Shown: one piece after another, positions 1,160 to 32,745 of the stretch
Position numbering within the stretch: the stretch's first letter is position 1
Layout: each line of letters opens with the position of its first letter
DNA from: Paragordius varius
Taxonomy: Eukaryota > Animalia > Nematomorpha
Assembly (NCBI GenBank): GCA_964247055.1
Contig: OZ176052.1
Span: 2,945,001 to 2,978,000 of the forward strand
Reading direction: 5' to 3'
Length of the DNA: 33,000 nucleotides
The notes under the pieces: model-generated
Seen by the model: only the letters and a program-made list of their open reading frames with translations
The model's database searches: none
Told to the model about the DNA's origin: nothing
Made by a program: the position numbers and the translations under genes

Positions 1160-1223
1160 ATGCATTGCATTTTTTATACAACTATCATTATTGTAACTAC
1201 ATTTAATCATGAGATTTTATCAA
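1160..1223 (+). CDS. Cys-domain gene exon 1 (tentative signal peptide MHCIFYTTIIIVTTFNHEILS)
   Basis: ATG, hydrophobic stretch, phase-1 donor A|GTAAAT compatible with exon 2. Confidence 0.4.
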
Positions 1224-4200
1224 GTAAATTTAATTTAAATAAAAAAATTTAATTTTAATTAATTAATAATATTATATTTCAATGATCTTGGCTTCTAACA
1301 TTGGAAATGTTTTACTTAAGCGTACGATAAAATATAATACAAATCAAGAATAGTTAGTTTCGATACAAAATTTGGTAATTAAATGCTCCGGGACTTTATA
1401 AATAAATTTTATTACCAATGAAGTTTTTGGTATAAATTTTAAGTCAAAGTTAAAATTAGGCACATTCTCGCTGAATGAACGTCAGTATTACTTATACCGC
1501 TCACGAGCCGTATAAGGCATTCAATTAAATTTTCGAGCCAGAGATTTATATATTAAAATTTTAAAAATCTAACATTACATCAGCGGGATATGTTTCGGCT
1601 TACAACACAAAATTATGTAAGAATTCAATACTACGAATATGATGTGAAAAGAACACGGATTTCCTCATTTTATATAATGTGATACCTAATTTAACATATT
1701 TATATGTGTAACAGCCAAGTTTTTGATATAAATTTAAGTTATATTATTTTAGGTTTTTATTTTAAATACTGTCTTAGGAATAAATAAAAACGCAACTAGT
1801 TAAATTTATATCTCATGGTTTGGATAGTGTGGTCATAAAATGTTTCGTATTACAACAATTAAAAGTATAATTGATTTAAAACCTTTAATTAGGAGTTATT
1901 TAATATTTATAATTAGGTTTTTGCCATAGCAAATATTCACCATTTAAATACTGCCAAATACCGTCACATGGTTATTGCTACAAGGAGAAATTTTTCAACA
2001 ACACATGGGATTATGGGTAATATACTTAATACAACTCAATAACAAAATACCCAAAATTAGCATTTTATTTTTAATTATTGATTCAATTAATGTACGCCAT
2101 TATAATTAACGTCCCATGTCCCAAAATTATTTATACTGTATGGATATCATCAGATCTGGTTGTTCAGGTGTTTGCAATTTATTTTTACTTGGCTTTCTGA
2201 GTTATCCTTTATATTGATATGTATAAATAAAGAAATTTGTTTATCTTAAAATTTTTGAGAAGTATAATAAATATAAATTTTAAGACCGTTTGGTTGTTTT
2301 CCCTTGGACTTAATGAAGTAATTGCCGTTTTTATAATTAATAGATCAAAAATTTGTTATTAAAATAATTATATAAATTTTAAAATAAAGCTATTCAAGTA
2401 AATGACTATAAAAAAATTATGATAATGCAATTCAAGTATGATTTGATAGATACTATTATGTGGTAAAATTTTTACTGATGTCACAACATAATCAAAATTA
2501 TCGTTTAAAAAAATATAACATATTTTACAATTAAAATTATCGGGTATGTTTTGAAATACATACGAAATGAAGAATGCTATATATCCACATTAATACAAAT
2601 TAACCATACTTAACACACCAGAGATACCTTGTAGCATTTATCAGGATCTTTATTAAGAATCAATGACATAAAAAATTAGTAAATTAAAAATTATTTACAA
2701 TTTAAAATAATTTAAAATAATTTAATGCAATAACCTTTTTTTGTTAGAATTTTAGGTGGCACACATAACCTTATACTAAATTAATGCAATAATGAGATAC
2801 ATTAAATAGTATTTAAACTGCTCATGTATAATTTTTAATAACTGTGCATAAATATTATACTATATATTAGAATATTATTATAAGAGCGCTCCCTATATAT
2901 AAATAAATAGATGTATCAATTCGAGTTTGGAATGTGCACATATAGATTACCTTGCCATATTTAACCCAAACTCTGGCATAATCTCAGGGAAACAGTGTTG
3001 TAACAGTCATTTTTGTAATCGAATCATAAAAATTACTTTTCCCATGGGTAAACATATCTATCAATGTTTTCAAAAAGTTAAAAAATTAAAGGTTAACAGG
3101 ACTCGAAATATATTAAATTGCAATTTTATATCGATACATTTTAGAAATTAAATATAATTATTTATATACCGTGGTTATTACTTTAATTGAGTCTGATAAT
3201 CCGGTTAGTAATAATTTTGGGAATATAACCATTAAAAAACTTTAAAAATATTTTATTAAGTGATTAAAATTAATATAAAATGATATACAACATTTTTAAA
3301 ATATATTTATAAATGTTTAAACATCAAACTTGGCTTCTTATTAAAACTTTAAAACTTTTAACCGCAATGACACCCTAAACTGAGACATGCCTTTTTATTC
3401 AAGTTAATTATCTTTTACCATTTTGAAAACCCATTAACTACCTGTAATTCATAGTTTGTATATCACACGGTTATCGATTGTATACATAGCCAATCTATCA
3501 TACTTAAATTTTTGTGATGCAAAAATTAAGTTACTTATAAAACGGTTACTTCAAATTTTAAACGCGCTCATATAATTAAGTGATTTAAAATTTTTACAAA
3601 TTTTGTACAATGAAAAGGTTGCTTTTAATAAAGGTTTTCAATAATGTCCAATTAATTCCAACATTCAATTATATAAGGTATTGATGTGGAAGGGGAAGAT
3701 AATAAAAAGCAGAAATTATGTTTATGCACCAACTGTACAGGATTGGCAAAACATTTGTGCTCAACGGGCTTGTGTTACAGAAAAATCAATGCATTGGGAG
3801 TTACATATGGGTAAAACTATAATATAATAAATTTATTAGCCGTTAATTTGAGGCCTTTATGCACTAAAAATACGCCATCATATAGCGATTATTTAGTGTA
3901 GAGGTATTTTTTCGATAGATGATTCCAAATATTCTCCCTATAAAGGCAATAAATTTTTAGCGCTTTTTCTATATAGGCCTATGGTGACGGATCAACCGGT
4001 TTAAAACTGATACGCCCTACAAAAATGGCATTTTGGAGCATTTTCAAAATATTTAAGAAGCCATACAAGTTCAATAATGGCTTTAAATATTAACCATATA
4101 AAGGTAAAAATATAGAGCGGTTTTTTCCGTTAGCGTCGATTTGGGGCCTTTACACCGGTAAACAATATATTAGTATGAATGCACAGTTTTGACAATCCTA

Positions 4201-4365
4201 AGAGATAATAGCTATTAAATAATGTTTCGAAATAATCCACATATATGGATCATTTTATTGTCCCCTTTTTCAAACAGCCCACCCCCCCCCCCAGATTTCC
4301 GAAGGACTTTCTCGGAAGTAGCACGAGATTTACGCTAGTTTTTAAATAAAATAAAGGATACATGA

Positions 4366-4411
<46 letters not shown>

Positions 4412-7400
4412 AGGACTTGAACTTTTAAACATGTCTATTATGTAGATCAGGGCTTCTTAAACTATGGGTCGCGATCCCATTTGGGGTCGTGTAGCAAAAT
4501 TATGGGGGCGCGAGTGATAAAAATACAATTTAACAAAAAATGTTTTTTAACTTGTAAAATGATTGTTATAAAAAAACATAACAATCATCGTAGATATTAT
4601 AAAATTTTCTGGTTGGGAAAGACTGTTTATATCAAAATTTCTATTCCCATCATTATAATCTATGTAATTATAAAAATGGAAAATGATGGCTTTGTGATCT
4701 GTTTCTGGAAAACTGGTAGACCCATTCAAATCCAAATGTCAAAAAATAAAATCATTATGCACCGACAATAGCTTCGCTCATTTTTAGAATTAGGCTCCCA
4801 GTTCAGGCCCACCCCCTGTAAAAACGGAATTTTTTAACATAAGTCCATAAAAGTCGTGTTGAGGCAATTTTCCGGAAAAAGTGTTGGACCATTCCATTTC
4901 AAATATAATTTTATTTTACTTTTTTACGATTGCGCCGAACATAATCGGTTTACTTTTTTAATTTAGGCCCTCATTTTACCCGTTCCCCCCGTAAAATGCC
5001 ATTTTTTCAAAAAAAACTAAATTTTGCTCAGGATAAGAGACTGTTAAAATTCACTGAGGATTTCAGGTATTCCCTGTGGTCAAAATTTTAGTTTGTGTTT
5101 TGATTCTTTAATATTGGCTGCTGGGTAAACAGAACTGAGCCACTATATAGAAATTGTGTTGTTTTGGATCCAATTTACCTAAATACCCCTAGCTCGATAA
5201 AAATTGGGCTTTTTTTAGCCGTTAATTGGGGGCCTTTATGTACTAAAAATACGTCATCATATAACGATTATTTAACGTTGAGGTATTTTTTAACCCATGA
5301 GACGATGGTATCAAAGATGATTCCAAATATTCCTATAAAGGCAAAGAATTTAACTCAGCGCCTATCCCATATAGGTCTATGGGTAGGGGTCTACCGGTTT
5401 AATACTGGAGACGCCATACAAAAATGGCGTAGTTTTGGAGCTAATTTTCAAAAAACTTAAGAAGCCATACGAATTCAGTTAAAAATATTTCTGGGGATTT
5501 TGTATAATATCATTCTTTTCTTTCCTTTAAAAAGGGACCACAAATAATTTCCTATTTATATCCCTTGATCCCAGCAACGAAAATCTTAAAATAAAGTCAA
5601 TGATAGTTGAATATCTTTAATAAGGCAGAGATTTAATTTGGTCAATTTCGAGTAAACAATATTCGAGCCTATGCGAAAACCTGTAAAAGAATAATTAAAA
5701 CATTTATTTTAAAAATATGTTTTTATTATTTTTTACTCTATTAACTCTATTTATTGCAAAATTAAGAATAATTATCGGTGGGACTACGCTACAACGAACG
5801 TGACAGGGCCAGATAGTATCTCAAATAAATTTACTATTAATCAGAAAATGTTATAAAAATTTATAAAAAATGTATATTTATTTTTGTTAATTTATTAAAA
5901 CCGAAATAATCCTTATAAATATTTTCATCAAAATTTCTAAGTATTATTTCGAAAAAAACTCATATTTTTCTTTTATATTTGTTGGGGTCGTTAAGAAACT
6001 CGCAATCATAAATGGGGTCGTAAACTACAAAAGTTTAAGAAGCCCTAATGTAGATAATTGGTTTATTCTGCACAGGTTAACAGTGGAATATTACCTCTTT
6101 ACTATAAGGGGCCATTTATCTTAATGTCGTCAAAAACTTCGTCATTTTTCTTCTTTGTTAAAGGGGTTGTTTTCTTTGACTCTGCGGCACTCAAAATTAT
6201 TTTTTGATTGGTATCACTTTTTGATGTTTTAATTGGGTCAGCTAACAATATAATACGTTGGCTTCAAACAAATAAAGCGTATATGAATATTTTTATACTT
6301 ATTGACATTGTGAATTCAAATTCGTCTTTGTATTTAAAATGGCTACTTAATTCAAAATACTAAAGATTGTGTTGTTCATTTGTTTTGTATTTTATCATAC
6401 ATCAAGATTATTCATAAAATAAAATCCCTTTTTACCAAGAAGGATTTGTATATGTAATTTAAAAATTATCAAAATATTATACCATTAAACATTAAAAAAT
6501 TCTAAAGACGTAGGAGGCTAGAATTACAGTTGCGCTTTCCCAAAGAGAACATATTTTCTGAAAATAAGATTAAAAATACCAAAGCTAGTACAATTCACGT
6601 ATTATATTAACACTTCGATTCAAATTGGGGTATCTAAATACTCCAGACTATATTTAAATTAATATTTTAAAAAAACTACTGAAGGAAACAGTCCCAATTT
6701 AAATTTATGCTTCTATCCTGATAAAAATTATATAAATATGCCAAAATATCTTAATAATTTGTTTTGAAAAAAAAGTTCCATCTCAAACTACTTCAACGCC
6801 ATTTTTATTTTACAAAATCTTTGCAAAATATCGTCTTTATTTAATTTTAAGGGTATAAATAAAGCTAATTTTTTTTAATTTACATCTAACATTGAGAGAA
6901 ATAGAAAACGCGGTTTAGATATCTTTCTTCATTTTACAATTTGACACATGTAACATTGACCAAATTTTTACCTTTCGGTTTTATAAAATAAGTAATATTA
7001 AGTATTTTTGAATAAATTTTTTTATATATTTCGGTTTATTAATGTTATATAAGTGCAAAATTTTGCCATGGTTTAAATTCCTTCCATACTTTTTATAGTT
7101 TTTGATCTTAAACAGGCCTGTGGTATCCAAATACCCCAATATGAATCGGAGGACTAAAATAAGTGTGTTGTATCCAAGTGTTAAAAACAGTATTTTTAAT
7201 GGTTGTTTATTTCACACTATTGAATTTGCAACACAGTATAATATATGGCAAACAACAACATGTAGAATAAACAAACATTTTTATATTAAGATAATAATTT
7301 GTATTCTCGTAAAATTTATTAAAATCAAACTATATCCAAAATTTTCGATACATGAGAGTATCTTTTTCAATGGATTAAACTATAACAAAGGAAATTTTTT

Positions 7401-10400
7401 TTAATTAATCTTATTATTATTTTCCTTTGTTATAGTTTAATCCATTGAAAAAGATACTCTCATGTATCGAAAATTTTGGATATAGTTAGATTTTAATAAA
7501 TTTTACGAGAATACAAATTATTATCTTAACATAAAATATTCGTTCTCGATGACAATATAAACATTTTTATCCTTTCTTTTTTCCATACACTACTTTGTTG
7601 CAAATTAACCAACTATAGTGTAAAATAAGCAACCATTATAATGAATACGATTTATAATATCAGGTGCACTAATGATGGTTTCAATTTCTGCCCAGGACCT
7701 CCTAATATCAACCACTCTACCTCAACTCTGGTCTCTACTGTATATTGTTGCAACAATAGTCAATTATGCAATCTTGATCCTCACAAAATTAGATTAAATG
7801 ATCATCAATCTTTTGACTTAGGTTGTAATACTTAATTGTATTATTTTTTGTACATATTTATTTATAACTGCTTATACTAAAATAAAAGTGCTTTATTATG
7901 AAAATCTTTTGTTATTCGTGGGGCCCTTATAAAGTTGATTATGTCGAAAAATGTTGAAACCGAAATTTTTGTATTTAGAATAATTGGTTGGTTTAAAAAA
8001 TCAAAAAGAGTGATTTCCAAAAAAATAACTGGCTATGTTGGTTTCTATTGAAAGTTTCTGCCAAATTCTCAAGAACCATGTTTTATTTCATTCCTGGTTT
8101 TAAGGATACCAATCTAAATTACATATTTGTTAAAAATAATAATGTCTTTTTAAAATTGAAATAGAAAGAATTTATTTAATTATTATAATGCCAATCGCAT
8201 ATTCAGCAATTTTATTTAACATATTATATATCAAAAACACAATTGAATTAAACATTTTTATAACAATAGCAAGCAAATTTAGGGTTCGTAAAGTTAGATT
8301 CGAACGGTTAACATCCAACACAACTAATACCTACAACTTTAAATTTGTCAATTGGATTGGTGGAACACTCAGAGTCCAAATTTTCGAAATCTTTTCATTT
8401 GGTATTCGAGATGAAATGGTAATACACATTTACTATTGTTTTTTTTCGTAAAAGTTTAAATCAAAAAATTAAACAATCTTATTACATATCTGTCACCAAT
8501 CAATATTTTTAGTTTTCCATTTTAATGGTCTGTTATTTACATATATATATATGTAAAATTTACACTTCAATTCACCCTCAAACAATTCAAATTTACCCTA
8601 AAATAAATTATGTTTTTTAAGTTAAAAATTACCTTTATTGTTTAATATTTTTAAAAAATCAAATTTCGTTTTAAATTGACATATTACTGAAAAAATAACT
8701 ATGTCTAAGGTGACCAGATTTTTTGAAGGAAAAAGCTGGACAAATCTGAGGAGGGGGGTCATTGGGGGTACAACCAAAAATTTTTATACAAAAAATTTAT
8801 TGCAATATTTATTTTTTTTACATTATAAATATAAAGAAATTTGTACCTTATTCAATAAATTTACATGTGCACGAACAAAGGGTGAAGTGATTGTAATATT
8901 CTAGAAAAAAATAATAAAGACGAAATCATCACAAAGTGCGCTGGGTGATGCAAGAAGTGGCACAAAAAATATTTTTAACAATTTAGCGAATAATCTTAAT
9001 CAAAGCATTATTGTCAGATACACAGCGCTATTCAAACAGCTACTGATTTGTTACCCCTGGATGTGGAAAATATAGATGTTAAAATGGTTGGATATTGTAG
9101 AACTGTTGGTTAGCTCTTTTGCCAGCGATTGAAATATTTATAAAAATGTGATCTTCTAAAATCCTATTTTTTATCACATGACAAAGGTCAAAATTCCAAG
9201 TCAAAAAAGTTTAGAAAATAATTTTATACCATTACCTAATCGCAATATTATAAAGCATCCAGAAAAACAAGGCTCAATGAATAGCCAGAATATAAAAATG
9301 TTTTATACAAACAGAAACGATTATTTAGAGACAAGACGGTGCACAATGACACTTTTTTATGATGTCTCATTTTTAAATAAATATATTGAATGAAAACTTA
9401 TATTATGGACAACAGAAAATAATACGTAGGATAGAAATGGTTAAAATAATCATTTTTAAACAAATTATGTTCCATGAAATAATATTTTAATTGTAGAATT
9501 TGCATTATCTTTACCTGAACCACTGCTATTGAACGCGTTTTTCCACAGTAAATTAAGTAAGGACAGGGAATCAAATTAAAAATGTTGAATAAAAGCCATT
9601 TTATGTGTTCAAATATAATTTGACAAATTAAGACTTATACAATATTTTAAATAATTTTGTTTATTCTTTAACACAAAAACTTTAAAGAAAATATTTTATT
9701 TTTTGGTATATTTTTTGTTTGAGTGAATGCGTTTTAGCAGATTGTCATCTTTTTTTAAAATATTGTAGAAGTCTTCACAAGAATTTGTCAAATTATATTT
9801 GACAGATAAAACGACCTTTAAAGTTTCAACATTTAAATTTGGTTTTTCCGATGTCCACACCTGATTTACTGTGGAAAAAAACGCGCTCAGTAGCAGCGTT
9901 GGTTCCAGGTAAAGATAGTGCGAATTCCACAATTTTTATTTTTGTATGTATAGTTGGCTTCAAAATGATGAAATATTTCCAATCATTTCTTTTCTACTGT
10001 ATATTTTTCTTTTGTCCATAATTTAAGTTTGTCATTATTAATATACCTTTAAACTAATGATAATTCAGAAAAAAGATCATTTTCTAAAAGATTACTTTTT
10101 GAGAATTTTTGGGAGCAATTATAATCAAATGATTTTCGAACATAGCACCAATTAAATTCTGATTTTAATGTTATCCAATGAAAATGATCATTGAATTGCG
10201 TCGTCCAGTCTTCCAAATAATCTTTACAGTTTGTATAAAACATTTTTATATGGTACAGGATATCTTGGCGATTTATTAAGCCTTGTAATTATTTATTATA
10301 TTGCGGATGGTTAATGGTATAAAATTATTTTCTAACCGTTCTTGACATTGGAATTTTAGGTTACTAACTTCATTGGCTACTTCGATTGCCGAAATTGTCA

Positions 10401-13036
10401 CCTTCTATAAATTTAATAACATTTTGAAAGAGAGAAGCTAGGTTATGTAAGAATTCTAACCATATTTTTGAAAAAACTTTTACAAAACTTTTTTAAAGTT
10501 GTAGGACATTTGTCCTGTAAAAAAAAGATTTTAAAGGATCCATTTTTAAAATTCTTTCGATGGCTGGCATTAACCAACGAGTTTTACAATATCCAAGCAT
10601 TTTTTGATATTGAACTTCTGCATTTTCAAGGAATTCTTTAAGCGTTTCAACACGTACAGTGTATATATAAAAATAGGAATATATTTTAACAACTACATTT
10701 TCCACATCTAGGGGTAACAAATCAGCAGCTGTTTGAATAGCGTTGTGTATTATATGCGCTGCACACCCAACGCCAACAAGGTTTTGATTATGGTTATCTG
10801 TTGATTTATAAGATATATTTTTTGTTCCCATCCTTGCTTTTCCACCGAAGTTCGTATTGGTGTTGTCAGCACAATATGCGATGATTTTGTTTTGTCTTTT
10901 AAATTATTTTTCTCTAGAATAATGATTATTAAAGTAAAAATTATGTCGGAATTTTCACCGTGTGAAGAAATAAAACTATTTAATATTTACTCCGGTTTCT
11001 CATCAAAATATCTTATTAAAGTGGGAAATTTTGTTACCTTGTGATTTGATGCATCAGAGTATAGCGATATGATTTAATTTTCAACGAATCTTTTCGTATT
11101 TCAGAAAATGCATGTGGCGAAAGGACATTGCATAAGATGGCTTCAGCCTTTGTACGGGCACATGTAATTTTTTTATTAAATAAGGTACAAATAACCTGTG
11201 AGGTACAGTCCATAGATCTAAAGGAATGATTGTGATTAACGGCGTGAAAAGATAACACGCCCTCAGCTAGCGCCAAATTCTTTTCTTCCTCTCCAAAAGC
11301 GGTTTTTCGAAAAAAATCGTTCATTTTGTAAGATGATGCCGCCATATCTAAACATTTTTTATGTTTCTGTTTCCATATGCTTTGTAATATCATGCTTGCC
11401 GCCATGTGCTAGGGTGAATTCCCCCTCACATAAAGGACATTTAACAGATGATTTTTCGTTTTTTTGATAAAAGGAAAATCTTTCATTAATTAATCGTTAA
11501 ATTTACAACCTCTTTTTGTGCTCATATTTATAAACTACTATTAGTATAAAAAATATTAAATTACCTTAATTTTCTGGAATAAACGTGTAATGTACCAATT
11601 TGTGCTATCAATTTGTCTTTTAAGCTACCGATTTGTGGTATTAATTTGGCTTTTTAATAATGTTGGCAAGTAATAAAACTAAAATATTAGTATAATAAAT
11701 ATTATATTACCTTAATTTTCTGGAATAAACGTGTAAGGTACCAATTTTTCATATCAATTTGTCTTTTAATCTAGAGATTTGTGGTATTAACTTGGCTTTT
11801 TGATAATGACAATAGTAGTAGGAAGGAAAGTGTATAATCATATGATATAAATTCGAAAAAAATAAATATTTTTAATTTGAAAATAAAAAATTTTGATTTA
11901 AAATTTATATAGATTAAGATATTTAATAAATAATTTAAACGTATAAAAAAAATTTATTTGTATTAAAAAAAAATTTTTTTATATAATCGTGAAAAAGCGG
12001 GACATTTTAAAAACGTAGCGGGACGCGGGACAAAGTGTGAAAAAGCGGGACGTCTGGTCACCTTAACTATGTCGTAAAAATATATTTGATGTTAATGATG
12101 TGCTATAATAGCCCGAAAACAAAAATTTATTTATAGGGTGAATTTGAAGAGTAAATGGTATAATATATATATACAGTATGCATTTTAATGTATGTTCAGT
12201 AATTTTATTGCCAGTCCAATAATATAAATGGTTTATCCAATGCGTAAAATACTGACCCACGATATTATTTCGTAGTACACACATGAAAGAGGATTGACGT
12301 GAGAATTAACATAGGCTTTAATTTGATGGATATTTTGTAATGTTAAATTTTGAGAATATTATAGCAATTTATGTTAACATTTGTAATATTGTTGTTACGT
12401 ATTTAGATGCGGAATTTTGTGGGTTTTTATCTTTGATATATTAATAAATAGTAAAATACGTATTTTAAGATTTTTTATGCCAATTATTCCTAAAAATAAT
12501 AAATATTTTTTAACATGCTAAATACCTGTATTAATCGATATTTGTATTATAATTTTATATAGTTGTTATTACCACACAGGAAAATATATATTTTTGAAAA
12601 TTTAAGTAGATTTTAGATTTCATATATATATTTACCTGTGATTTTTTTAATTGGTAATAACAACTATATAAAATTATAATACCAATATCGATTAATACAG
12701 TTTAGCATGTTCAAAATATTTATTATTTTTAGGAATAATTGGCATAAAAAATCTTAAAATACGTATTTTACTATTTATTAATATATCAAAGATAATAACC
12801 CACAAAATTCCACATCTAAATACGTAACAACAATATTACAAATGTTAACATAAATTGCTATAATATTCTCAAAATTTAACATTACAAAATATCCATCAAA
12901 TAAAAGATATATTAATTCTCACGTCAATCCTCTTTCATATGTGTACGAAATATCGTGGGTCAGTATTTTACGCATTGGATAAACCATTTATATTATTGGA
13001 CTGGCAATAAAATTACTGAACATACATTAAAATGCA

Positions 13037-13088
<52 letters not shown>

Positions 13089-15547
13089 CATTGTCGTATT
13101 GTTTTTTTGACATTTTTTAGCCCAAGGGCCGTTTGGACCCTTTTTTAAACGCATAAAAGATTTAAATGTTTATTTATGAATTATATGCTTAAATTAAATA
13201 AATAATGAAATGTTTTAGCAAATAAGTAATTTAACTAAATTTATAAAACTTAAATATATTAAGAAGACTTCCTAAATTTTAAAAATAAGATATATGTGTA
13301 TGTCTAACTTTTAAAATGGTATCAATACATCTTACACATACTTGACTTATTTGATTTTATCAGGCATAAGGTCGTCAACGACCCCAATTTTAATTGGAAA
13401 ACACTTGAACATTATTTGTATTCAATTCGAGTGTTTTTGAAAAATAGGAATTTACCATTTCATATATGTTTTAACAGTGAGAACCTTTTTGCAGGAATCG
13501 CACAATTTTAACACTTCGATTCAAATTGGAGTATGTATACCCCAGACTAAATTTAAGTTAGAATTTTTAAAAAACTACTAAAAGAAACTGTCCCAATTTG
13601 AATTTACGCTTCTATACTAATAAAAATTATATAAATATGCCAAAATATAAAATTTTATCTTTAAAAAAAGTTCCATGTTAAACTACTTCGACGCCATTTT
13701 TATTTTATAAAATTTTTGAAAATACGTCGTCACTTAATTTTAAGGGTAAAATTAAAGCTAATTTTTTATTTAAATTACATCTAACATTGATAGAAATAGA
13801 AAAAGCGGTTTATTTTATATTACTTTTTAATTTTACCATTTCACATATGTCAGGTTGACAAATTTTTACCTTTCAGTTTTAGCTTAAAATAAATAATATC
13901 GAGTATTTTTGAATAAATTTTTTTATATATTTCGGTTTATTAATGTTATATAAGTGCAAAATCTTGCCATGGTTTCGATTCCTTCAATATTTTTTAAAGT
14001 ACCCCAATTTGAATCGAAGGACTGAAATGAATGTGTTGTATCCAAGTGTTAAAATATATCATTTTAAATTGTAAAAAATAATTGGAGGTAATAATTGGAC
14101 AATAAATTTGGTCTTTATTAATTTTAAACGTCACCGGGTTATTTAAATTAATATATTTAAAGAAATTACATATAAAAAACCAGTCCCTGGTGAATATTTT
14201 TTTAAAATTAATATTCCATCACTCGCCCCAGCTTACTTTTTACAGTTTTAACTAATGTTTTATAAAATCTCGATTTTTATATAATATATATATATATATA
14301 TATATATTATACCATTTACAGTTCAAATTCACCCTTGAACAATTCAAATTCACCCTCGAACAATTCAAATTAACCCTAAAAATAAATTATGTGTTTTCGA
14401 ACTAATATAACTCATTATTAATATAAAATATATCTTTATGGCATGATTAATTATTTTTTTCAGTATTATTTTAATATAAAACAAAATTTTATTTTTTAAA
14501 AATATATTAAAATATAGGTAATTTTTAATTTTAAAAAACATGTTATTTATTTGAGGGTAAATTTAAATTGTTCGAGGGTGAATTTGAATTGTTCAAGGGT
14601 GAATTTGAATTGTTTAAGGGTGAATTTAAATTCTTTAAGGGTGAATTTATATTGTTTAAGGGTGAATTTGAACTGTAAATGGTATATATTATAGAATACT
14701 AACGGGTCAATTTCGTTTGTCACCAAAAATAACCGAATCTACAAAATTAAACTTACACCAGTTATTGATGAACGTCATTATTTGACCGAATTTACAACAG
14801 AATTTTATATGGGACGTATGAAAAGTATGTGCCTAGCCAAAAAAATAAGTTCGACAACTAATTTTAAAATAATAAAAAAAAAATGTTTTGTCGCATATCG
14901 CATATACAATTATATCGGCCAAATTTAAATACTGGAAATGATTTTTAACATTTTAAATGATAAAAATTTGTCATTTATAGTATACAACTCGGAAAGGTAT
15001 TTTGATGAACAACTACAGTAAAAATTTAAATTATACAAACAAAATGTGGTAATATAAAGATATTTTTTCTATAAGACAACCATACTTTTTAATCCTGATT
15101 TTTTTAAATATCACTCATTGTTTTAAAACTATAAGGTATGATATATGTAAATTGGTAACACATTATGTTTTTTACGATTGTAATCAAATGTTTTTTATGA
15201 GATAAATTAAAGTTTAAACAAGTATGGTTTTTTTTTGAAAAAAAATTTGTATTTATATTTTTCATTTTGTCCGAATAATTCCAATTTTTACTGTATTAGA
15301 TTTTCAATGAAAAGTTTTAATTAATAAAACACTTTTTTTTTAATAATTGGCTAAATTTGTATAAATTTTAGATTTCAATACTACATGGATTAATTTGGAT
15401 AATTTGGAAAATTTGGATTTAAGACAAGTCATCATTTTTTTTGCTAATCAATGTCAAATAATTAGAACCAATATATTTTGTGATGCTAGGCAAGCCAATG
15501 TAATGTTGGAAAATGATTATAATCCCATCTTCTATTCTATAGAATAG
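1160..15547 (+). CDS. Putative secreted glycoprotein (~348 aa): signal peptide, two tandem TGF-beta/activin-receptor-ectodomain-like (three-finger, CC-x4/5-CN) domains and a beta-rich C-terminal domain; join(1160..1223,1917..2016,2911..3047,3678..3810,7664..7821,8270..8418,14695..14824,15372..15547)
   Basis: Eight GT-AG exons with matching phases (1,2,1,2,1,0,1) total 1047 nt, i.e. 348 aa plus TAG. Two Cys repeats end CCNSHFCN and CCNNSQLCN; eight N-glycosylation sequons; AATAAA at 15557. Exons 2-5 are well supported; exon 1 and the exon 5-6 link are less certain. Confidence 0.65.
1917..2016 (+). CDS. Cys-domain gene exon 2 (FCHSKYSPFKYCQIPSHGYCYKEKFFNNTWDYG), N-half of domain 1
   Basis: aattag| acceptor, GG|GTAATA donor, G-x-C-Y...YG|C pattern shared with exon 4. 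Confidence 0.75.
2911..3047 (+). CDS. Cys-domain gene exon 3 (CINSSLEC...KQCCNSHFCNRIIKITFPM), C-half of domain 1
   Basis: aatag| acceptor, G|GTAAAC donor, CC-x4-CN motif; overlaps ORF 2927..3151. Confidence 0.8.
3678..3810 (+). CDS. Cys-domain gene exon 4 (IDVEGEDNKKQKLCLCTNCTGLAKHLCSTGLCYRKINALGVTYG), N-half of domain 2
   Basis: ataag| acceptor, GG|GTAAAA donor, CxCxxC...C...GxCY...YGC spacing like type I TGF-beta receptor ectodomains. Confidence 0.8.
3835..4073 (+). repeat. Dispersed repeat fragment, copy 1 (diverged copy at 5216..5477)
   Basis: Shared blocks tagccgttaatt..ggcctttatg.actaaaaatacg, agatgattccaaatattc, taagaagccatac. Confidence 0.8.
4369..4408. repeat. (TA)20 microsatellite
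   Basis: Read directly. Confidence 0.95.
4448..6047. mobile_element. Non-autonomous hAT (Buster/Charlie-like) DNA transposon
   Basis: TIRs CAGGGCTTCTTAAACT / AGTTTAAGAAGCCCTA (15/16); perfect 8-bp TSD ATGTAGAT at 4440-4447 and 6048-6055, fitting NNNTANNN; subterminal GGGGTCG motifs. Confidence 0.9.
5216..5477 (+). repeat. Dispersed repeat fragment, copy 2, inside the hAT element
   Basis: Homologous to 3835..4073. Confidence 0.8.
6611..7180. mobile_element. piggyBac-like MITE, copy 1
   Basis: TTAA at both ends, termini CACTTCGAT.../...ATCCAAGTG, subterminal inverted copy of the left end; three copies in window. Confidence 0.85.
7190..7648. mobile_element. Foldback/palindromic MITE-like element
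   Basis: Near-perfect inverted arms ~7283-7395 / ~7419-7537 with weaker outer arms; partial copy at ~26766-26863. Confidence 0.8.
7664..7821 (+). CDS. Cys-domain gene exon 5 (CTNDGFNFC...YCCNNSQLCNLDPHKIRLNDHQSFDL), C-half of domain 2; extends to TAA at 7835 if used as terminal exon
   Basis: atatcag| acceptor in phase 2, CC-x5-CN motif; overlaps ORF 7641..7835. Confidence 0.8.
8270..8418 (+). CDS. Cys-domain gene exon 6 (ASKFRVRKVRFERLTSNTTNTYNFKFVNWIGGTLRVQIFEIFSFGIRDEM)
   Basis: aacaatag| acceptor in phase 1, ATG|GTAATA donor, only one open frame, locally raised GC. Confidence 0.6.
8840..9655 (+). pseudogene. Inverted, internally deleted second copy of the same hAT transposase
   Basis: Colinear plus-strand fragments matching the reverse complement of ~9755-11190 (ICTLFNK.TCARTK; ctattcaaacagct.ctgatttgttacccct; LENNFIPL; KMFYTN; caaatataatttgacaaatt). 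Confidence 0.8.
9696..11525 (-). pseudogene. hAT transposase pseudogene
   Basis: Fragmented frames: Zn finger CPLC...HGGKHDITKH; HNHSFRSMDC...CARTKA; GCAAHIIHN (CxxH); CKTRWL; C-terminal LPGTNAATER...FSTVNQVW. In-frame stop and several frameshifts. Confidence 0.9.
11539..11808. repeat. 146-bp-period tandem duplication upstream of the transposase start
   Basis: Two copies of tattagtataa..ttaccttaattttctggaataaacgtgtaa..gatttgtggtattaa. Confidence 0.9.
12174..13041. mobile_element. ~870-bp foldback palindrome; TA-flanked, CAGT-ended, Tc1/mariner-type MITE-like
   Basis: Arms of ~400 bp nearly perfectly complementary around ~12605; set in TA repeats. Confidence 0.85.
13040..13085. repeat. (TA)23 microsatellite
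   Basis: Read directly. Confidence 0.95.
13512..14048. mobile_element. piggyBac-like MITE, copy 2
   Basis: TTAA flanks; homologous to 6611..7180 with a short internal deletion. Confidence 0.85.
14310..14684. mobile_element. TA-flanked MITE with TIR TACCATTTACAGTTCAAATTCACCCT and 21-bp subterminal tandem repeats
   Basis: Perfect TIR, repeat unit ttcaaattcacccttgaacaa on both arms. Confidence 0.88.
14695..14824 (+). CDS. Cys-domain gene exon 7 (NTNGSISFVTKNNRIYKIKLTPVIDERHYLTEFTTEFYMGRMK)
   Basis: attatag| acceptor in phase 0, 43 open codons, donor A|GTATGT (alternative C|GTATGA at 14815, same phase). Confidence 0.6.
15016..15293. mobile_element. Tc1/mariner-type MITE, copy 1
   Basis: TA-CAGTAAAAATT...AATTTTTACTG-TA; same family as 29334..29603. 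Confidence 0.75.
15372..15547 (+). CDS. Cys-domain gene terminal exon 8 (FNTTWINLDNLENLDLRQVIIFFANQCQIIRTNIFCDARQANVMLENDYNPIFYSIE*)
   Basis: ttttag| acceptor in phase 1, 57 open codons to TAG, AATAAA 10 nt downstream. Confidence 0.6.
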
Positions 15548-15556
15548 TTGTGAATT

Positions 15557-15562
15557 AATAAA
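15557..15562 (+). terminator. Candidate polyadenylation signal
   Basis: AATAAA just after the exon 8 stop; weak alone in AT-rich DNA. Confidence 0.35.
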
Positions 15563-18500
15563 TGTTTAAATATATTTATCTCTAGTATATTTATAAGAAA
15601 TACATGATTTTTTTCACAAATCTAAAGGATGAAAGTGATTGCACAATACTTTATAAAATATATAATTTAGATATCCCGATTATCATGTTGATTTTAGATT
15701 AGATTCTAAGTCAATTGTTTTTTATACGGTTTTAACGATTTAAACCTTAACCCAAGTGTTATGAGCAAAGTGTGTCCAAAAACTAATATTTATTTTGATT
15801 CCATGATTTAGCATATATATATTATATATATAAAACTCAAGTGAAACGGCTCTTTTGCATTTATTAAAACTGGCTCATTTTAAGGACAAAAATCAAAGTT
15901 ATATAGTTGTATAATTATAATTAATAATGGTACCCGAATATTCCGGTTTGTCTTTATTGACCAAAATTTAGCATTTTGTTTGCTAATTTTGGGATTTTCC
16001 GATATGTAATAATTCGATAAATTTGATAAATTCCTTAATTGAAGTAAACACTAAAGTCAAAAACATCATGAGAAGGGATTTAAAACCCTTGATTTTGTTG
16101 TTTGTATAGATACATTACAATTAAACTTTTTACTTGACCTCTCATTATTTTTCTACTTTCTTATAGATAAATACATGGGATGTTTATCTTCGTTAGTAAA
16201 AACTATATAAGATATAACGTTTTCAATATATTGCAAAAAGGATATAGAGTCATATAGTTTAAGGGAGAACGTCTTTGGTTTAAAATGAGGGTGTCCATAC
16301 AAATAGCTTTGAGGACCTCATCCAAAATATATTTAGGCATAAATATTTTTTAAATAAAATGCAAACACAATATAACAGTTTCAGGTTCGTTGCCTACTGG
16401 ATAAACTTATTCAGAAATTTGTTTTAAAAATATGAAAAGATTTTAGAAGCATATTGCAAATATTTCAAAATTCGCCGCACAAAATGCCTCTGAGTGCCGC
16501 ATGTGGACCGCGTGTACATCCCTTCTTAAAACCAGGTTGGATATAATAAAGCGAAAAACAAGCTTAAAACAAAAGACCATAGACAGAGTTCTATGCTCAT
16601 ACAGGTTGCATCAAATAACTCCCTTACTCGGGAAAACCTATAAATAAAAGGCATACCCATACATAAATTTATATGTCTAAAAATTGTTTTTTGGATATGA
16701 CCGAAATTCATGGAAAACATTTTATAATTAAATCAATGATATTTTTGCCATAATGAGATTTTTTATTTGCCAGGCTTTAAGGAAAACAAAAAATTCAAAA
16801 ATATTACGGATTTCCATTTTAAAAATTAGACATAAGATGCTAATTGTAAATGTGGCTAAATACATTCTATAATTTTATTGAGTAATGTTTGAATCGGGAA
16901 ACTACCCAAAATAAAGTAGTAAAAATTTAAGATTTTTAAAGATTAATAATCATTACCGTTCCCTCAAGAATTATTATTCGATTTTAAAATTAAAGATACT
17001 AGGCAAAATATTAAGAACATGCATTCTTTAGTCAAAGCGCATGAAATATAAAAATTTGAAATTAAAAATATATAATATTTTTTTCGTCGTTATTTTCTTT
17101 GGAGTTGTATTTTCCCAAGGAAAATGTAAATATTATAAAAAATATTTTCAGGATCGGGCCAAATTTAAAACATGCTTTCCTCATTTTAGGCGCATGACAC
17201 TTTTTTTAAAAAAATATAAAATTGTTAAAAAGCCTCATCTCATTTGGTCGCCATTTATACAACAGTCAAGTAAAATTATATTAGTAAAAAATAAAATAAT
17301 CAACTTTGTTAGCTATCAAAATCCATTTTACCAGAAAATTTTTGATATATATATATATATTGATTTTAATATCAGGTGTTTGCTTCTATCATGTTTTGAA
17401 GCCATTCGAAAGCATACAAGTTAGAAAACTGTAAAAAATTAAATTTATATCTAGTACACGGAAAGAGGATTGATATTAAATTTAAACCAAACAACTTTAA
17501 ACAGTAGTTTGTTAACTACTTTAATACTTCATGATCTTTTGGGGTAGTTATATATCCCAGAGAGAAAATTAAAAAAGGTATTGGGCTGAATTTGAAAAGT
17601 GCAGGCGCGTATATAAAATTAAAAATATTAAATTAAAAAATCCTCATACACTATTTCTTGCCACTGTAAATATTTTTACTCTTCATTACATCTTTTTTTA
17701 ACTTAGTTTATCTTTTGGGGTAGTTTTATATCCCAGAGATAAATTTTGTAAGACATTACAGTTTTAATTTTTAGTTAAATTTTTCTTTTCGAACATTGTG
17801 ATTATGTATTAGAAAAAAACTTATATTTTTAACAGTTGTGTGACTTCTTAAGTCTAAAAATGGGATAGTTCCGACGCACGATATAAACGAACAGCAGATA
17901 TCAAAATGTATCAAGTTTTAGCGGGTAATATGTAGCCTAAAATTTTGTAAAATAGTTTTTTATATATTTACTAACCAGAATATGCATTTATTTGCCTATT
18001 TTTAGCGTAAAAAACATGAAAAAACGGACGGTACAAAAAATAAAAATGATTTTTTTAATTTTTTAAAATAGTTATTGTATAATGCGCCAAAAATGATGAA
18101 GAAAGCTTAAATTCGGTTCAACTTAATCACTTTTTTAAGAATCTCGGACATAAACCAACCCTAAAAATATGTAAATCGCTAATGCAACAGGATAAATATA
18201 GATTATGGTTAGAAATTAAAAAAAATTTAATTTGAAAAGCTTTCGGGCTTCATTTTACCAGAAAAAACTGATATATTTTTATTGTAATACCAGTCTGTTT
18301 CAATCCTGTTTTGGAGCTATCCTATAAGTCACAAAAATGTAAAAAATATAAGCTTTTTTATCAAATACCTGACAACAATAATTGATAATTGAATTTTTGA
18401 TAAAATGAGACAGTAGTGTGGTTTATTTACAAAATTGAGTTTTAATATAAACCACCACAAAAGGTAAACTAGGGCAAAAAAGTCAAAAGTATTAAAGTGT

Positions 18501-18788: not shown

Positions 18789-21700
18789 GTTATTATTTAC
18801 CTAAAATGATACTTTGCTCAACATGCAATATAAAATATTTTCATTACAATATTTAGCAAAAAATGGCACAAGAGATTTTGACACGCCTAAAAGAACACCA
18901 GGATGCTTGGACCCGAGTAGATACCATACTTGAGTTTTCCACCAATCAAGAAACAAAATATTATGCGTTACAGATCCTTGAAAATACCATTAAACATAGA
19001 TGGAAAGCTCTGCCAAGAGCTCAATGTGATGGTAAAATTATATTATATATGCATTCTTTATATATAATTTTATATAAATTTATATTTTAGGTATAAAGCA
19101 ATACATTGTTGGTTTGATTATAAAAATCTCTTCGAATCCCGATATGTTGGAAAAGGAAAAGGTCTATTTGGGAAAACTAAACATCATATTAGTTCAAGTA
19201 AAAAATTTGTATTGCATGCTATTTTTAAAAATCATCATCGGATAAATACTACACTCCCCCTTTTTCTAAAAACTACAATCAAATGAATTTTTTAATCTCA
19301 TAAAATTATATAGAGAGATTTAAAATTTTTATTTAAAGAACTTCTAATTTAAGTTGATTGGACCATGAATAATACTAAATACAGCATTTTTTATAGTTAT
19401 TAAATTAACAATGCCTTTAAATATAATAATTGTTTTTATTGCATAGATTCTTAAAAAAGAATGGCCTCATAACTGGCCCAACTTCATTAGCGAAATAGTT
19501 GGAGCAAGCAGTACAAATGAATCTTTGTGCCAGAATAATATGATTATATTAAAGTTACTCAGGTATTAGATTAATTTTTTGCTATTAAGTAAATTTTTTA
19601 CCACAATTTAAAAGTCACTAAAATATTAGGGTTTAAGGTTAGGAAGTTTTATTCCATTTGGTTTACTATTTTTTGAAAACACTCTCCTATTAATATCTTA
19701 CAGATAAAGCAGAAGATAATTAAAAAAATATTATTAGGTTATGTCAATTTATTTTTTTATCCAAAAATAATCACTTTTATGAAAAGTTTTATGGCGTTTT
19801 TATATGCCGACCGATTATAATATTTGGATATATTTTAGCAAATCCTTTTTAAAAAAACTTTCTTATAATTATTAGCGAAGAAGTATTTGATTTTTCGTCC
19901 GGACAAATGACTCAAACAAAAGTACAACATCTGAAAGAGCACATGTGCAAAGAATTTATGCAAATATTTCAATTATGTCAAACTGTTTTGGTAAAATTAT
20001 CTTAATTTTTTGGTTAATAAATCACATAAATTGTTTATCTAAATTTTACGTAAACAATTATATTATATTAGGCTTTTTAATCGATATTGCCGTGTTTCAT
20101 ATTGAATTTCTAAGAAGTTCAAAGGCTGTTTATTTATTTTTTTCTAAAATAATATTAATTAGGGCCTACATTCAATTTATATCGAAATGCAAATTATTGT
20201 ACAAAAAATATTTAGAAACTTATATTTATGCTTTTAATTTTGATTTTCAGGACACATCTCAAAACGCGCCTTTAGTCTTATCGACACTAGATACGCTTTA
20301 TCGATTCCTTAGCTGGATACCGCTCGGTTACATTTTTGAAACGAAAATGATTGCAACCCTAATCCATAGAGTATACGACTTATATTCCATATTTTATAAA
20401 TTTTATTTATATAAATATTAAAGATGAATATAAAAAATAATTTATGTGATATGTTTTCTCAAAAATATTTTTTAATTTAATTTTTTTACTAATTTTTTGC
20501 TTTTATAAAGTCAAACCTCTTTAATTTGGATGGCTATGTTGCCTGCTGTGTCATTTTCAACACCATAAAAGCAGTTTTTGTCATTTCGATACATTTATAT
20601 ATTTTCATAGCCATGAAACCTTTGGGCAAAATATTAATTACATTTAAATATCCTAAGAATTAATCTATGTTTTTACCAAAAAACTAAACACTGAAATATA
20701 AAATTATTGAAGTTTTTGCTTTGAACCCAATAGTTGTTATTTATTAATTTACTTTTATGTAAATTATTTGAATTACAAATATTTTAATTGAATGTAAATT
20801 TATATTTAGTTTTTGATGGTACCGTTGTTCCGAAACATAACACTGAAATGCCTAACAGAAATCGGTATAACTCTCTTATATCATTTTTTAAAGCTACTCT
20901 AAAATCATTATTATATTTGACATATTATTCTATGACCACAGATAATTCCCAATTTCCTATCATTTGTTATAGTTACTTTAAAATTAATTTTTATTTGACA
21001 TGTTATTCTATGACCACAGATAATTTCTTAAATTATCTTGTTGACATTACATGATATAATGTTTAATTGACTCAAAATTAAGACATTTTAAATTAAATAA
21101 TTTTCGTAATTGGATCTATTCAATGAAAATGTAATGTGTATACATTAGTTAATAAATAGTTGTGTATCGCATTTATAAGCCTAATAAGCAAAGCACAACA
21201 TTAGTTTCAATTAATATTAAACAAATATATATTACCACTTTTTTCAATATGAATTTACTGTTATTTTAATTATATAATTAGTTTAAAGTTTTTTTTAGTT
21301 TAAATTGACTTGAATTATAAAATATTAACATCTGTATATGTCTATAGTTTCTTTGAATGATGCCCAATTTGATGAGCAATTACTTGTTTTGTATGTGGAA
21401 ACTATGGAGAAAATCAAAACGCTTATACCCATTTGTGGAGCTGACCTAGCCACGGCTTACAGCAAAGGAACTGATGATGAACAAAATTTCATACAGAATT
21501 TGAGTCTTTTCCTGGCTGCTTTTTTGAAAGAGCATGGTATATTAAATATACTTTTTTTCTTCTAATAGCGTTTTATTTAATAGATAAACGAATAATTAAT
21601 AGCTTATTGTGGTTATTATGTAACTCATTAAGATACTATTTATACTCTTCTCTTTATAAACTTTTTTGTTTTAATACATAGAGCGCGCCTAAAAACTAAT

Positions 21701-23435
21701 TGGCTTATGATGAATATCTAACACTTTTTAGTACAATCATAGTTTTATTTCATAGATTAAAGATAATTTAGCCGTGTTATAAGAATTTAGTATAATAATA
21801 TTTTATTTATGAATAAAACTATTATAAAATTATTTGGTTTTTATCAAGTATAATCAAAACTTTGTGTTTACCCTTTACATGTTGAAATATCACAATAAAT
21901 GATGTTCTAATTGATAAAATAAATTAAAAAAATGTAGAAAATAGGTTTGAAATTGAAAGCTGCGTTAGATACAAAGGTGCTACTTGATGTAGCCTTTTAT
22001 GATATAAAAAAATTAGAAAGCAATGGTTTCCGTAATTTTTCCCAAGCAATGGTTTCCATAATTTTTTCCCATAACAATTTAATAAATTATGAAAATATAG
22101 CGGAGTACCAAAAACCATTATAATTAAAATTTATCGCTTCACTTCATTTGCTTTGAGATTTTTTATCCCGATAAATTATATATATTACAATATTTAACTA
22201 TTGAAACTAAATTTTAACTTAAAATATGGCACACTATGACACACATATGGGCTATTAATAATTCTTCAAAAATATTTTTTTTAATTTTTCTAAAACCAAA
22301 GTTTTATATGATCACTTTTGAAATACCCAAAATATAAGGTATGATTACCAAAATGGTGATTTAAAAAACGGTTTCTTTGTAAAAAATATAGTTTTTACAT
22401 TATATATATGATTTAGTTTTTATATACTATTTACAATTCAAACTCACCCTCGAACAATTCAAATTCACCCTAAAAATAAATTATGTGTTCTCGGGCTAAT
22501 ATAACTCATCATTAAAATGAAATATATCCTAGTAGCATAGTGTATTATTTTCTCAGTATTATTTTAATTTTAAGCAAAATTTCATTTTTTAAAACATAAA
22601 AAATTTGAGTAATTTTTATTTTAAAAACGACTTAATTGATAATAGGGTAAGTTTGAAATGTTCGATGGGAAATCTGAAATGTTCGAGGGTAAATCTGATT
22701 TGTTTAAGGGTGAATTTTACACCTGTAAATGGTATATTTCATTAAAAATATGTATACTACTTTTTTTCTCATTTTATTACTTATTTTTTACTTTATAAAT
22801 GATAAAAAAGGTTCATTATTGGAGAAAAAAATAATGTTGGAAGAAGACAGCCAATCCAAATCACCCCCTGATGAAACATACTATCTGGCTTCAAATGGTG
22901 TCGATACTATACAAATACCCATGGGAAATAAATTGAAGGATGTTTTGATTCAAGTTTGCACTTTTATTTGACTCTATTACAAAAACTTTTTTTGTTTGTT
23001 ATTAATAAATTTATTTAAAGCCCTAATATAAGAAAATAAAAGACAGGAATATTTTAGATATGGAGAAAATTATTGATTTAGGTTTGCTTTTTCATATTTT
23101 TGCTTATAATGGTTTTTTTATCTACTGAACAGCATTTAAAGGCTAATTAGTAGGAAAAACTGATCATCAATCATTTTTCCGATTTTTAAATGAGGTCCAA
23201 GTTTTTAAGTTTTATTATAAATTTTATGTAGTCCCGAAAAATTTGTGGATTTTGAAACTCCTATAAAATCATTTTTTATTTTTCGAATATATTTGTAAAA
23301 TAATAGAGGATATAAAATAAATATTATAATTAATATTTAATTGGATAAATCAATTTAAACTTTTTTCTACAAAATGTTATGATGCGGATATAGTTATATT
23401 TTTCTTACAATCGGTGTAATTATGGAGAAACGTCA

Positions 23436-23473
<38 letters not shown>

Positions 23474-32139: not shown

Positions 32140-32745
32140 TACCATTTGCACTTCAAGAGTGTCCTTGAACAGTTTAAGTTGGTCCTTGAACAATTCAAGT
32201 TGGCCCTCGAACAGTTGAAGTTGGTCCTTGAACATTTCAAGTTGGTCCTTTGACTTTTTTGTTTTGTTATTAACTTTTATCAGTCAAATCGTAAATAATT
32301 CATCTATTATATTGTTTTTAACCTATTTTCTATTATTTAACATAAATTCTAAATCGATATCAACTTTTAATCTTTGAGAAACCGTATATCTTTATTAATT
32401 TCTTAAAATAATTTTGGATATTTATAAGATTTTAATACGAAATGAAAAATATATAAGTTTTCTGGGTTAATAATTAAAAATTTTCATTAAAAACATTTAA
32501 AAGTCAATAATTTTGTTCAATTGAAAAAAAAATAGTTTGAAACAAAAAAGTGGTTTTAAATTAAAAAATTTATTTTTAAATGAATAAATATATAATAAAT
32601 AAAGAAAATTAGGTTAATAAATAATAAAATAAAAAAATAAATGCAATAATTATGATTAAATCAAAATTTATAAAGTTTAAGGACCAACTTACTGTTCAAG
32701 GACCAACTTGAATTGTTCAAGGACACTCTTGAAGTGCAAATGGTA
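32140..32745. mobile_element. TA-flanked MITE related to the TACCATTT family (XPO1 intron 20)
   Basis: Perfect 32-bp TIR TACCATTTGCACTTCAAGAGTGTCCTTGAACA; 21-bp subterminal unit ttcaagttggtccttgaacaa. Confidence 0.88.

Follow-up and report, generated by a model that had tools for sequence, protein, structure and literature searches.

What is encoded by the small exons spread over positions 1160 to 15547 of the plus strand in a 33-kb stretch of the Paragordius varius genome, and what might their product do? The stretch (C3:2945001-2978000, about 25% GC; hereafter the window) belongs to a genome assembly of 110.6 Mb in 44 contigs, and its DNA contains kilobase-sized introns and transposon relics. 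An earlier note had read these exons as a hidden gene encoding a secreted product, in which two domains resemble the ectodomains of transforming growth factor beta (TGF-beta) receptors, and had put forward a soluble decoy or ligand trap. Our analysis points to a genuine gene, the product of which is probably a secreted, N-glycosylated, non-anchored binding protein of 348 residues, predicted to consist of two tandem Ly6/uPAR-type (LU, three-finger) domains and a C-terminal tail.

An eight-exon gene and its paralogue

The gene model was rebuilt independently from the DNA, and the joined frame was assembled, counted, and aligned with a paralogue found elsewhere on the same contig. Joining the eight exons yields a coding sequence of 1047 nucleotides for 348 residues, with one terminal stop codon. 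All seven introns begin with GT and end with AG (donors GTAAAT, GTAATA, GTAAAC, GTAAAA, GTTGTA, GTAATA, and GTATGT); their phases, from 5' to 3', are 1, 2, 1, 2, 1, 0, and 1. The GC fraction is 0.33 to 0.35 in the exons versus 0.26 to 0.27 in the introns. When each exon was searched against the whole genome, exactly one extra copy was obtained, in every case on C3. These copies form a paralogue on the minus strand (C3:2687733-2676759), 258 kb away, which likewise comprises eight exons and has all intron phases identical. Its product of 345 residues is 51% identical to the window protein, all 20 of the 20 mature cysteines align, five N-glycosylation sequons are common to both proteins, and the stop codon is placed alike in both copies, one to two residues past a shared DYNPIFYS motif. 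The eight-exon spliced gene of about 348 codons described in the earlier note was thus recovered with a clean frame and seven GT-AG introns, and the paralogue search which that note had asked for returned one relative with the same exon set, confirming every exon. Profile searches of the genome, based on half-domain alignments (A1 and A2), revealed no third member of the family; the only extra, weak matches in the genome profile searches were a low-complexity open reading frame (ORF) and an ordinary Ly6 exon.

Selection was assessed by counting nonsynonymous (pN) and synonymous (pS) differences per site in the paralogue pair according to Nei and Gojobori. The values were 0.318 for pN and 0.806 for pS, the synonymous sites being saturated. 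Since pN is far below a saturated pS, both copies have kept their frames intact under long-standing constraint. At the nucleotide level, identity between the paralogues is barely higher in the exons than in the intron flanks, which places the conservation at the protein level. Judged from these sequence comparisons, the gene is genuine and protein-coding, one of two old paralogues on contig C3 that are under purifying selection.

Predicted domains, secretion, and the C-terminal tail

The cysteine patterns that the earlier note had claimed were reproduced exactly in both domains. Domain 1 has eight cysteines and ends in CC-x4-CN, and domain 2 has ten, arranged as CxCxxC-x7-C-x4-CY ... YGC-x7-C ... 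CC-x5-CN; both thus contain eight to ten ordered cysteines and close with CC-x4/5-CN, and these features, like the tandem pair as such, are conserved in the paralogue. The three-finger beta fold is held by disulfides 1-5, 2-3, 4-6, 7-8, and 9-10. According to alignment A2, Cys2 and Cys3 are absent from domain 1, the positions of Cys7 and Cys8 being kept, so that domain 1 is predicted to lack the small 2-3 disulfide, while domain 2 has the full consensus set of ten cysteines. Across all six reading frames, the window contains the pattern CC-x4/5-CN at exactly two places, each within the gene model; first-order Markov simulations of the window (n = 200, six-frame translation) gave an expectation of 0.12, and at least two occurrences were seen in 0 of 200 simulations.

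Specifically, domain 1 is divided between exon 2 (1917-2016, plus strand), which contains the N-terminal half with three cysteines, ends in ...WDYG, and is entered in phase 1 and left in phase 2, and exon 3 (2911-3047, plus strand), which contains the C-terminal half with five cysteines, including the CC-x4-CN motif, followed by the start of a linker and a phase 1 donor. Exon 4 (3678-3810, plus strand; phase 1 in, phase 2 out) continues with an acidic linker and the N-terminal half of domain 2 (CxCxxC-x7-C-x4-CY ... YG), and exon 5 (7664-7821, plus strand) completes that domain (C-x7-C ... CC-x5-CN) and ends with a phase 1 donor. Identity to the corresponding exons of the paralogue is 57% for exon 2 (counterpart at C3:2686611-2686512), 56% for exon 3 (50 bits), and 55% for exon 5. 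The gene layout, with a signal exon followed, for each domain, by two exons between phase 1 introns and an inner phase 2 intron one nucleotide before Cys6, corresponds to that of canonical LU genes, which have a signal exon and a two-exon set per domain with phase 1 flanks and an inner intron at the loop 2 tip (PMC6600238). In both paralogues the phases run 1, 2, 1, 2, 1 from the exon 1-exon 2 junction through the exon 5-exon 6 junction, and exons 3 and 4 join in frame. As the tandem order is kept in the paralogue, it cannot have resulted from wrongly joining alternative exons. Identity between domains 1 and 2 is 18 to 31%, compared with 48 to 56% for each domain and its own counterpart in the paralogue, so that the domain duplication must be older than the gene duplication. 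Language-model features from the Atlas gave a weak pointer (0.76) from exon 5 to the clan of TGF-beta receptors and LU proteins: the top named cluster was a TGF-beta receptor ectodomain, and nine of the ten best named matches fell in one clan, which we treat as a lead only. Note that the ectodomains of TGF-beta-family receptors are themselves counted among the LU domains (PMC6600238). Taken together, cysteine pattern and gene structure lead us to assign both domains to the LU type, with a predicted three-finger fold.

Exon 1 (1160-1223, plus strand; donor GTAAAT, phase 1) comprises an ATG plus 21 codons for a hydrophobic leader, which was called signal-peptide-like by eye and from hydropathy (Kyte-Doolittle, 19-residue windows along the 348-residue model) and which holds the highest-scoring window of the whole protein. 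Its counterpart in the paralogue encodes a similar leader (M-I-P-I-I-Y-T-I-I-L...) and has the same CAA|GTA donor in the same phase. Past the leader, no transmembrane helix was found, 0 windows scoring above 1.0, and the last 20 residues, with a hydrophilic mean of -0.44, show no hydrophobic tail of the type that signals attachment of a glycosylphosphatidylinositol (GPI) anchor. The model contains eight N-x-S/T sequons, the number reported in the earlier note. That note had also stated that transmembrane helix, GS box, kinase, and GPI-type tail are all missing, and this is borne out by the hydropathy, the conserved stop, and the location of the kinase exons on other contigs; signal-like leader, sequons, and lack of an anchor likewise agree with the secreted, glycosylated character it had proposed. 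Elsewhere in the genome, a last exon typical of Ly6 genes (C5, about 8768383-8768577, minus strand) reads ...YCCNNKDLCN and then continues into a hydrophobic GPI-type tail, providing an internal contrast to the anchor-less window gene.

The tail encoded by exons 6 to 8 is hydrophilic, comprises about 146 residues with two conserved cysteines, and is 51 to 56% identical between the paralogues, on par with the LU domains; the motifs VRFER, KFVN.IGG, YKIKLTP, NTTWI, and DYNPIFYS are invariant. Exon 6 (8270-8418, plus strand; phase 1 in, phase 0 out; 55 to 59% identical to the paralogue exon) encodes a cysteine-free, beta-rich-looking part (KF.VR.VRFER ... KFVN.IGG), exon 7 (14695-14824, plus strand; phase 0 in, phase 1 out; 56% identical) the second part (NTNG ... 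YKIKLTP ... FY.GR), and exon 8 (15372-15547, plus strand) the end (NTTWI ... QC-x8-C-DA ... DYNPIFYS) with the stop codon TAG at 15545-15547. Exons 6 and 7 together form a unit of 93 residues between phase 1 introns; units flanked in this way are frequent among mobile extracellular modules. An AATAAA at 15557-15562 (plus strand), 9 nucleotides past the stop, is a possible polyadenylation signal, although such a match is weak evidence in DNA of 25% GC; the paralogue has an AATAAA 44 nucleotides past its own stop.

Relatives were sought in Pfam, PDB, protein databases, and metagenomes with single exons or half-domain and exon profiles as queries. The tail exons had no match in Pfam or PDB. Exon 8 had no match in the Atlas and yielded no candidates in a word-index protein search, although the length window of that search gives this blank little weight, and metagenome contig scans with exons 8 and 5 retrieved no relatives. 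The C-terminal LU half-domains, four in all, were also combined into one profile, and an exhaustive HMMER search of 1.84 billion cluster representatives with it had a single match (P0001), an unrelated, repetitive protein of 259 residues. A full-length match to a known family, which the earlier note had named as a finding that would speak against its proposal, did not appear in these exon-wise searches. On this sequence record the family would either be confined to its lineage or have escaped annotation in all relatives sequenced so far.

Possible functions and rival explanations

If the protein is, as we consider probable, a secreted tandem-LU binder, it would be exported and fold into two disulfide-locked three-finger modules. 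The finger loops of both LU domains would contact an extracellular partner, which may be a receptor, a channel, an enzyme, or a ligand, and the conserved tail could supply a second surface for binding or oligomerisation; a ligand of the TGF-beta family is only one candidate partner. SLURPs, Boudin, PLA2 inhibitors, and toxins are secreted LU proteins acting by such binding. Several observations weigh against this reading. At E values up to 10, none of the exons of either copy had a family match in Pfam beyond noise, and this includes Activin_recp, UPAR_LY6, and QVR, the three profiles with which the earlier note had suggested checking its domain assignment. Against PDB sequences, the profiles A1 to A5 gave no match other than antibody complementarity-determining region 3 (CDR3) segments and further chance matches. 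The leader lacks a basic n-region. The only runs under this species label that were guessed to be RNA (X4 to X6; small contig sets, tissue unspecified) contain nothing of window positions 1900 to 7899, which is no sign of silence. As no orthologue was found, selection was deduced from one pair of paralogues, the synonymous sites of which are saturated; run X3, which represents DNA of a near-identical organism, adds no selective information.

The absence of these positions from the RNA contigs, together with the absence of any similar annotated protein among the 1.84 billion cluster representatives, would also suit a dead or never-expressed relic, be it a pseudogene pair or a set of chance ORFs. 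We regard this as very unlikely, given that both copies keep open frames, all splice sites, the 20 cysteines, and five sequons despite saturated synonymous divergence, that pN is far below pS between them, and that DNA of 25% GC would give a stop about every 11 codons. An ordinary GPI-anchored Ly6 protein of the insect type (Boudin, Coiled, Sleepless) would account for the cysteine pattern and the LU gene structure. It is extremely unlikely, however, in view of the two domains instead of one, the hydrophilic 146-residue tail, which ends in ...DYNPIFYSIE with no hydrophobic GPI signal, the presence of just such a signal in the control Ly6 last exon of the same genome, and the failure of the QVR and UPAR_LY6 profiles to match. 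Drosophila babo has the alternative exons 4a, 4b, and 4c, and the resemblance of domain 2 to type I ectodomains and the identical internal exon structure of both domains could suggest that the two are alternative ectodomain exon sets, used one at a time, in a Baboon-like receptor kinase gene, the tandem then being an artefact of joining. This explanation was rejected and seems barely conceivable: the paralogue contains both domains in the same order and, after them, three matching exons of non-receptor type with the conserved stop, and the junction of exons 3 and 4 is in frame in either copy; the only contigs of this genome with GS-box and type I kinase exons are C1 and C6; and the next gene on the same strand is that for exportin-1/CRM1, with many exons over window positions 18863 to 30000 (plus strand) and recognisable IBN_N (18863-19090, plus strand) and CRM1_repeat_3 (26493-26714, plus strand) domains. 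Conserved stop, neighbouring exportin-1 gene, and receptor kinases on other contigs together argue that the window gene does not encode a receptor.

As the soluble decoy of the earlier note, the protein would have two type I-like ectodomains fill both type I sites of a TGF-beta, BMP, or activin dimer and so block signalling, the acidic linker of roughly 24 residues joining them. The likeness behind this proposal lies in domain 2, for which the receptor-like pattern described in the earlier note was upheld by comparison with the babo-like type I receptor of the same genome (ectodomain at C6:~9.8928-9.8931 Mb). Domain 2 starts with CLCTNC and the receptor with CYCNIC, both having the C-x-C-x2-C spacing of the ALK4/5/7/Baboon type, and the intron before the domain (phase 1) and that just before Cys6 (phase 2) agree in position and phase. 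Beyond this start, domain 2 shares with type I receptors (ALK4/5/7, Baboon) the ten cysteines, the ...CY, and the CC-x5-CN end. In hhalign comparisons with the half-exons of the babo-like receptor, P values of 1.3e-4 (exon 4) and 4.7e-4 were obtained, which are marginal and driven by the cysteine motifs. An aromatic residue lies just ahead of Cys7, as it does in type I receptors (Phe85 in BMPR1A), and the Atlas cluster of exon 5 points in the same direction.

Against the decoy stands the exon-by-exon comparison with PF01064 (Activin_recp), which matched three exons of the genome, on C6 and C1, at 25 to 31 bits and none in the window. True type I receptors have a single ectodomain followed by transmembrane helix, GS box, and kinase, whereas the window protein has two domains and none of these elements, and outside the cysteines identity is low. 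The type I receptor knot, C1-x-C2-x2/3-C3, is found in domain 2 only and not in domain 1, and the later cysteine spacings of domain 2 suit CD59 and Ly6 proteins equally well. In the activin/TGF-beta branch, type I ectodomains show little ligand binding unless a type II receptor is present, and the decoy leaves the conserved 146-residue tail with no role. We therefore judge a soluble decoy of this kind unlikely. The ligand-trap function as such draws on pattern resemblance, and the sequence data neither support nor refute it. In a related and similarly doubtful scenario, a lineage-restricted, unannotated secreted family would have arisen from a duplicated Baboon-like ectodomain exon pair combined with a new 146-residue domain, acting on ligands of the activin/TGF-beta type as a bivalent trap or as a presenting factor. 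We know of no soluble antagonist with tandem type I ectodomains in animals.

Surroundings of the gene and its place among LU proteins

Repeats account for part of the intron sequence. Intron 4 (window positions 3700 to 7700) contains high-copy dispersed repeats, copies of which also lie near the paralogue; in run X3, their contig word depth is in the thousands to tens of thousands, compared with about 4 to 5 in the single-copy flanks. Intron 6 measures 6.3 kb in the window gene versus 50 nucleotides in the paralogue, and much of its length is taken up by inverted transposase-like ORF fragments at 8680-9400 (plus strand) and 9696-11405 (minus strand), which share the motifs ...AHIIHNAIQTAADLLPLDVEN... 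and ...FNK.ITCARTK.E... and look hAT-like by eye, with no match in Pfam. A minisatellite of 21 bp (unit about TTTAAGGGTGAATTTAAATTG, translating as ...RVNLNCS... repeats) is found in introns genome-wide, with copies in the window at 14318-14377, 14550-14676, 22644-22698, and 32161-32250 and also at the loci L005 and L008; it adjoins the type I receptor on C6 as well. Between the LU gene and that for exportin-1 lies an ATG-initiated ORF of 127 residues (17041-17424, plus strand) with a hydrophobic, signal-like start (MKYKNLKLKIYNIFFVVIFFGVVFSQG...) and no match in Pfam, which may encode a small secreted protein or have arisen by chance. Two observations concern the receptor genes. The half-exons of the babo-like receptor are separated by only 29 nucleotides (GTAATT...TTATAG; C6, about 9892930-9892975, minus strand), unusually short for an animal intron, so that a micro-intron or an assembly error may be considered. 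A complete type I-like Activin_recp ectodomain occupies one exon at C1:12508572-12508835, about 584 kb from the nearest GS-box and kinase exons (C1:11923698-11924574), a distance implying either a very long gene or parts of different receptor genes.

LU domains almost always occur singly, as repeats in GPI-anchored proteins, or as receptor ectodomains. The gene model, the tandem domains, and the soluble character described in the earlier note have held up, but the architecture, which that note did not recognise, is less unprecedented than it had suggested: multi-LU proteins are already known, among them uPAR, C4.4A/LYPD3, Haldisin/LYPD5, zebrafish proteins with two LU domains, and some Drosophila proteins (PMC6600238). 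With these the window protein shares the tandem arrangement, the separate two-exon sets with phase 1 flanks, the CC-x4/5-CN ends, and an N-terminal domain of eight cysteines that is short of one consensus disulfide. The bond concerned differs, however, since the N-terminal LU domains of mammalian uPAR, C4.4A, and Haldisin lack the 7-8 bond, whereas domain 1 of the window protein, by alignment, lacks 2-3. Moreover, the known multi-LU proteins are GPI-anchored and composed of LU domains only, whereas in the window protein an anchor signal is missing and a non-LU tail of 146 residues is added, and no match between them was found at the sequence level. Secreted single-LU proteins (SLURP-1/2, snake three-finger toxins, PATE, and diffusible Boudin) are soluble extracellular three-finger binders, as proposed here, but have one domain and no additional C-terminal domain, and Boudin is synthesised with a GPI signal. 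By analogy with this group, the window protein most likely acts as a soluble extracellular binder. BAMBI and engineered ligand traps (PMC8718839) show that kinase-less LU ectodomains of the receptor type can interfere with TGF-beta-family signalling; this is the analogy on which the decoy idea draws. BAMBI, though, is a one-domain membrane protein, and the traps are artificial Fc fusions.

What is new here, then, is the non-LU tail of 146 residues, the missing anchor, the lack of detectable relatives, and the predicted loss of the 2-3 disulfide in domain 1. The gene would represent a new architecture of the LU superfamily, in which a secreted tandem of LU domains is combined with an unrelated conserved domain and maintained in two copies under purifying selection. 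It also exemplifies a real multi-exon gene that standard annotation by homology would overlook, as it escapes both family models and a search of 1.84 billion protein clusters. Should its partner prove to be a ligand of the TGF-beta family, the protein would constitute a new class of natural antagonist.

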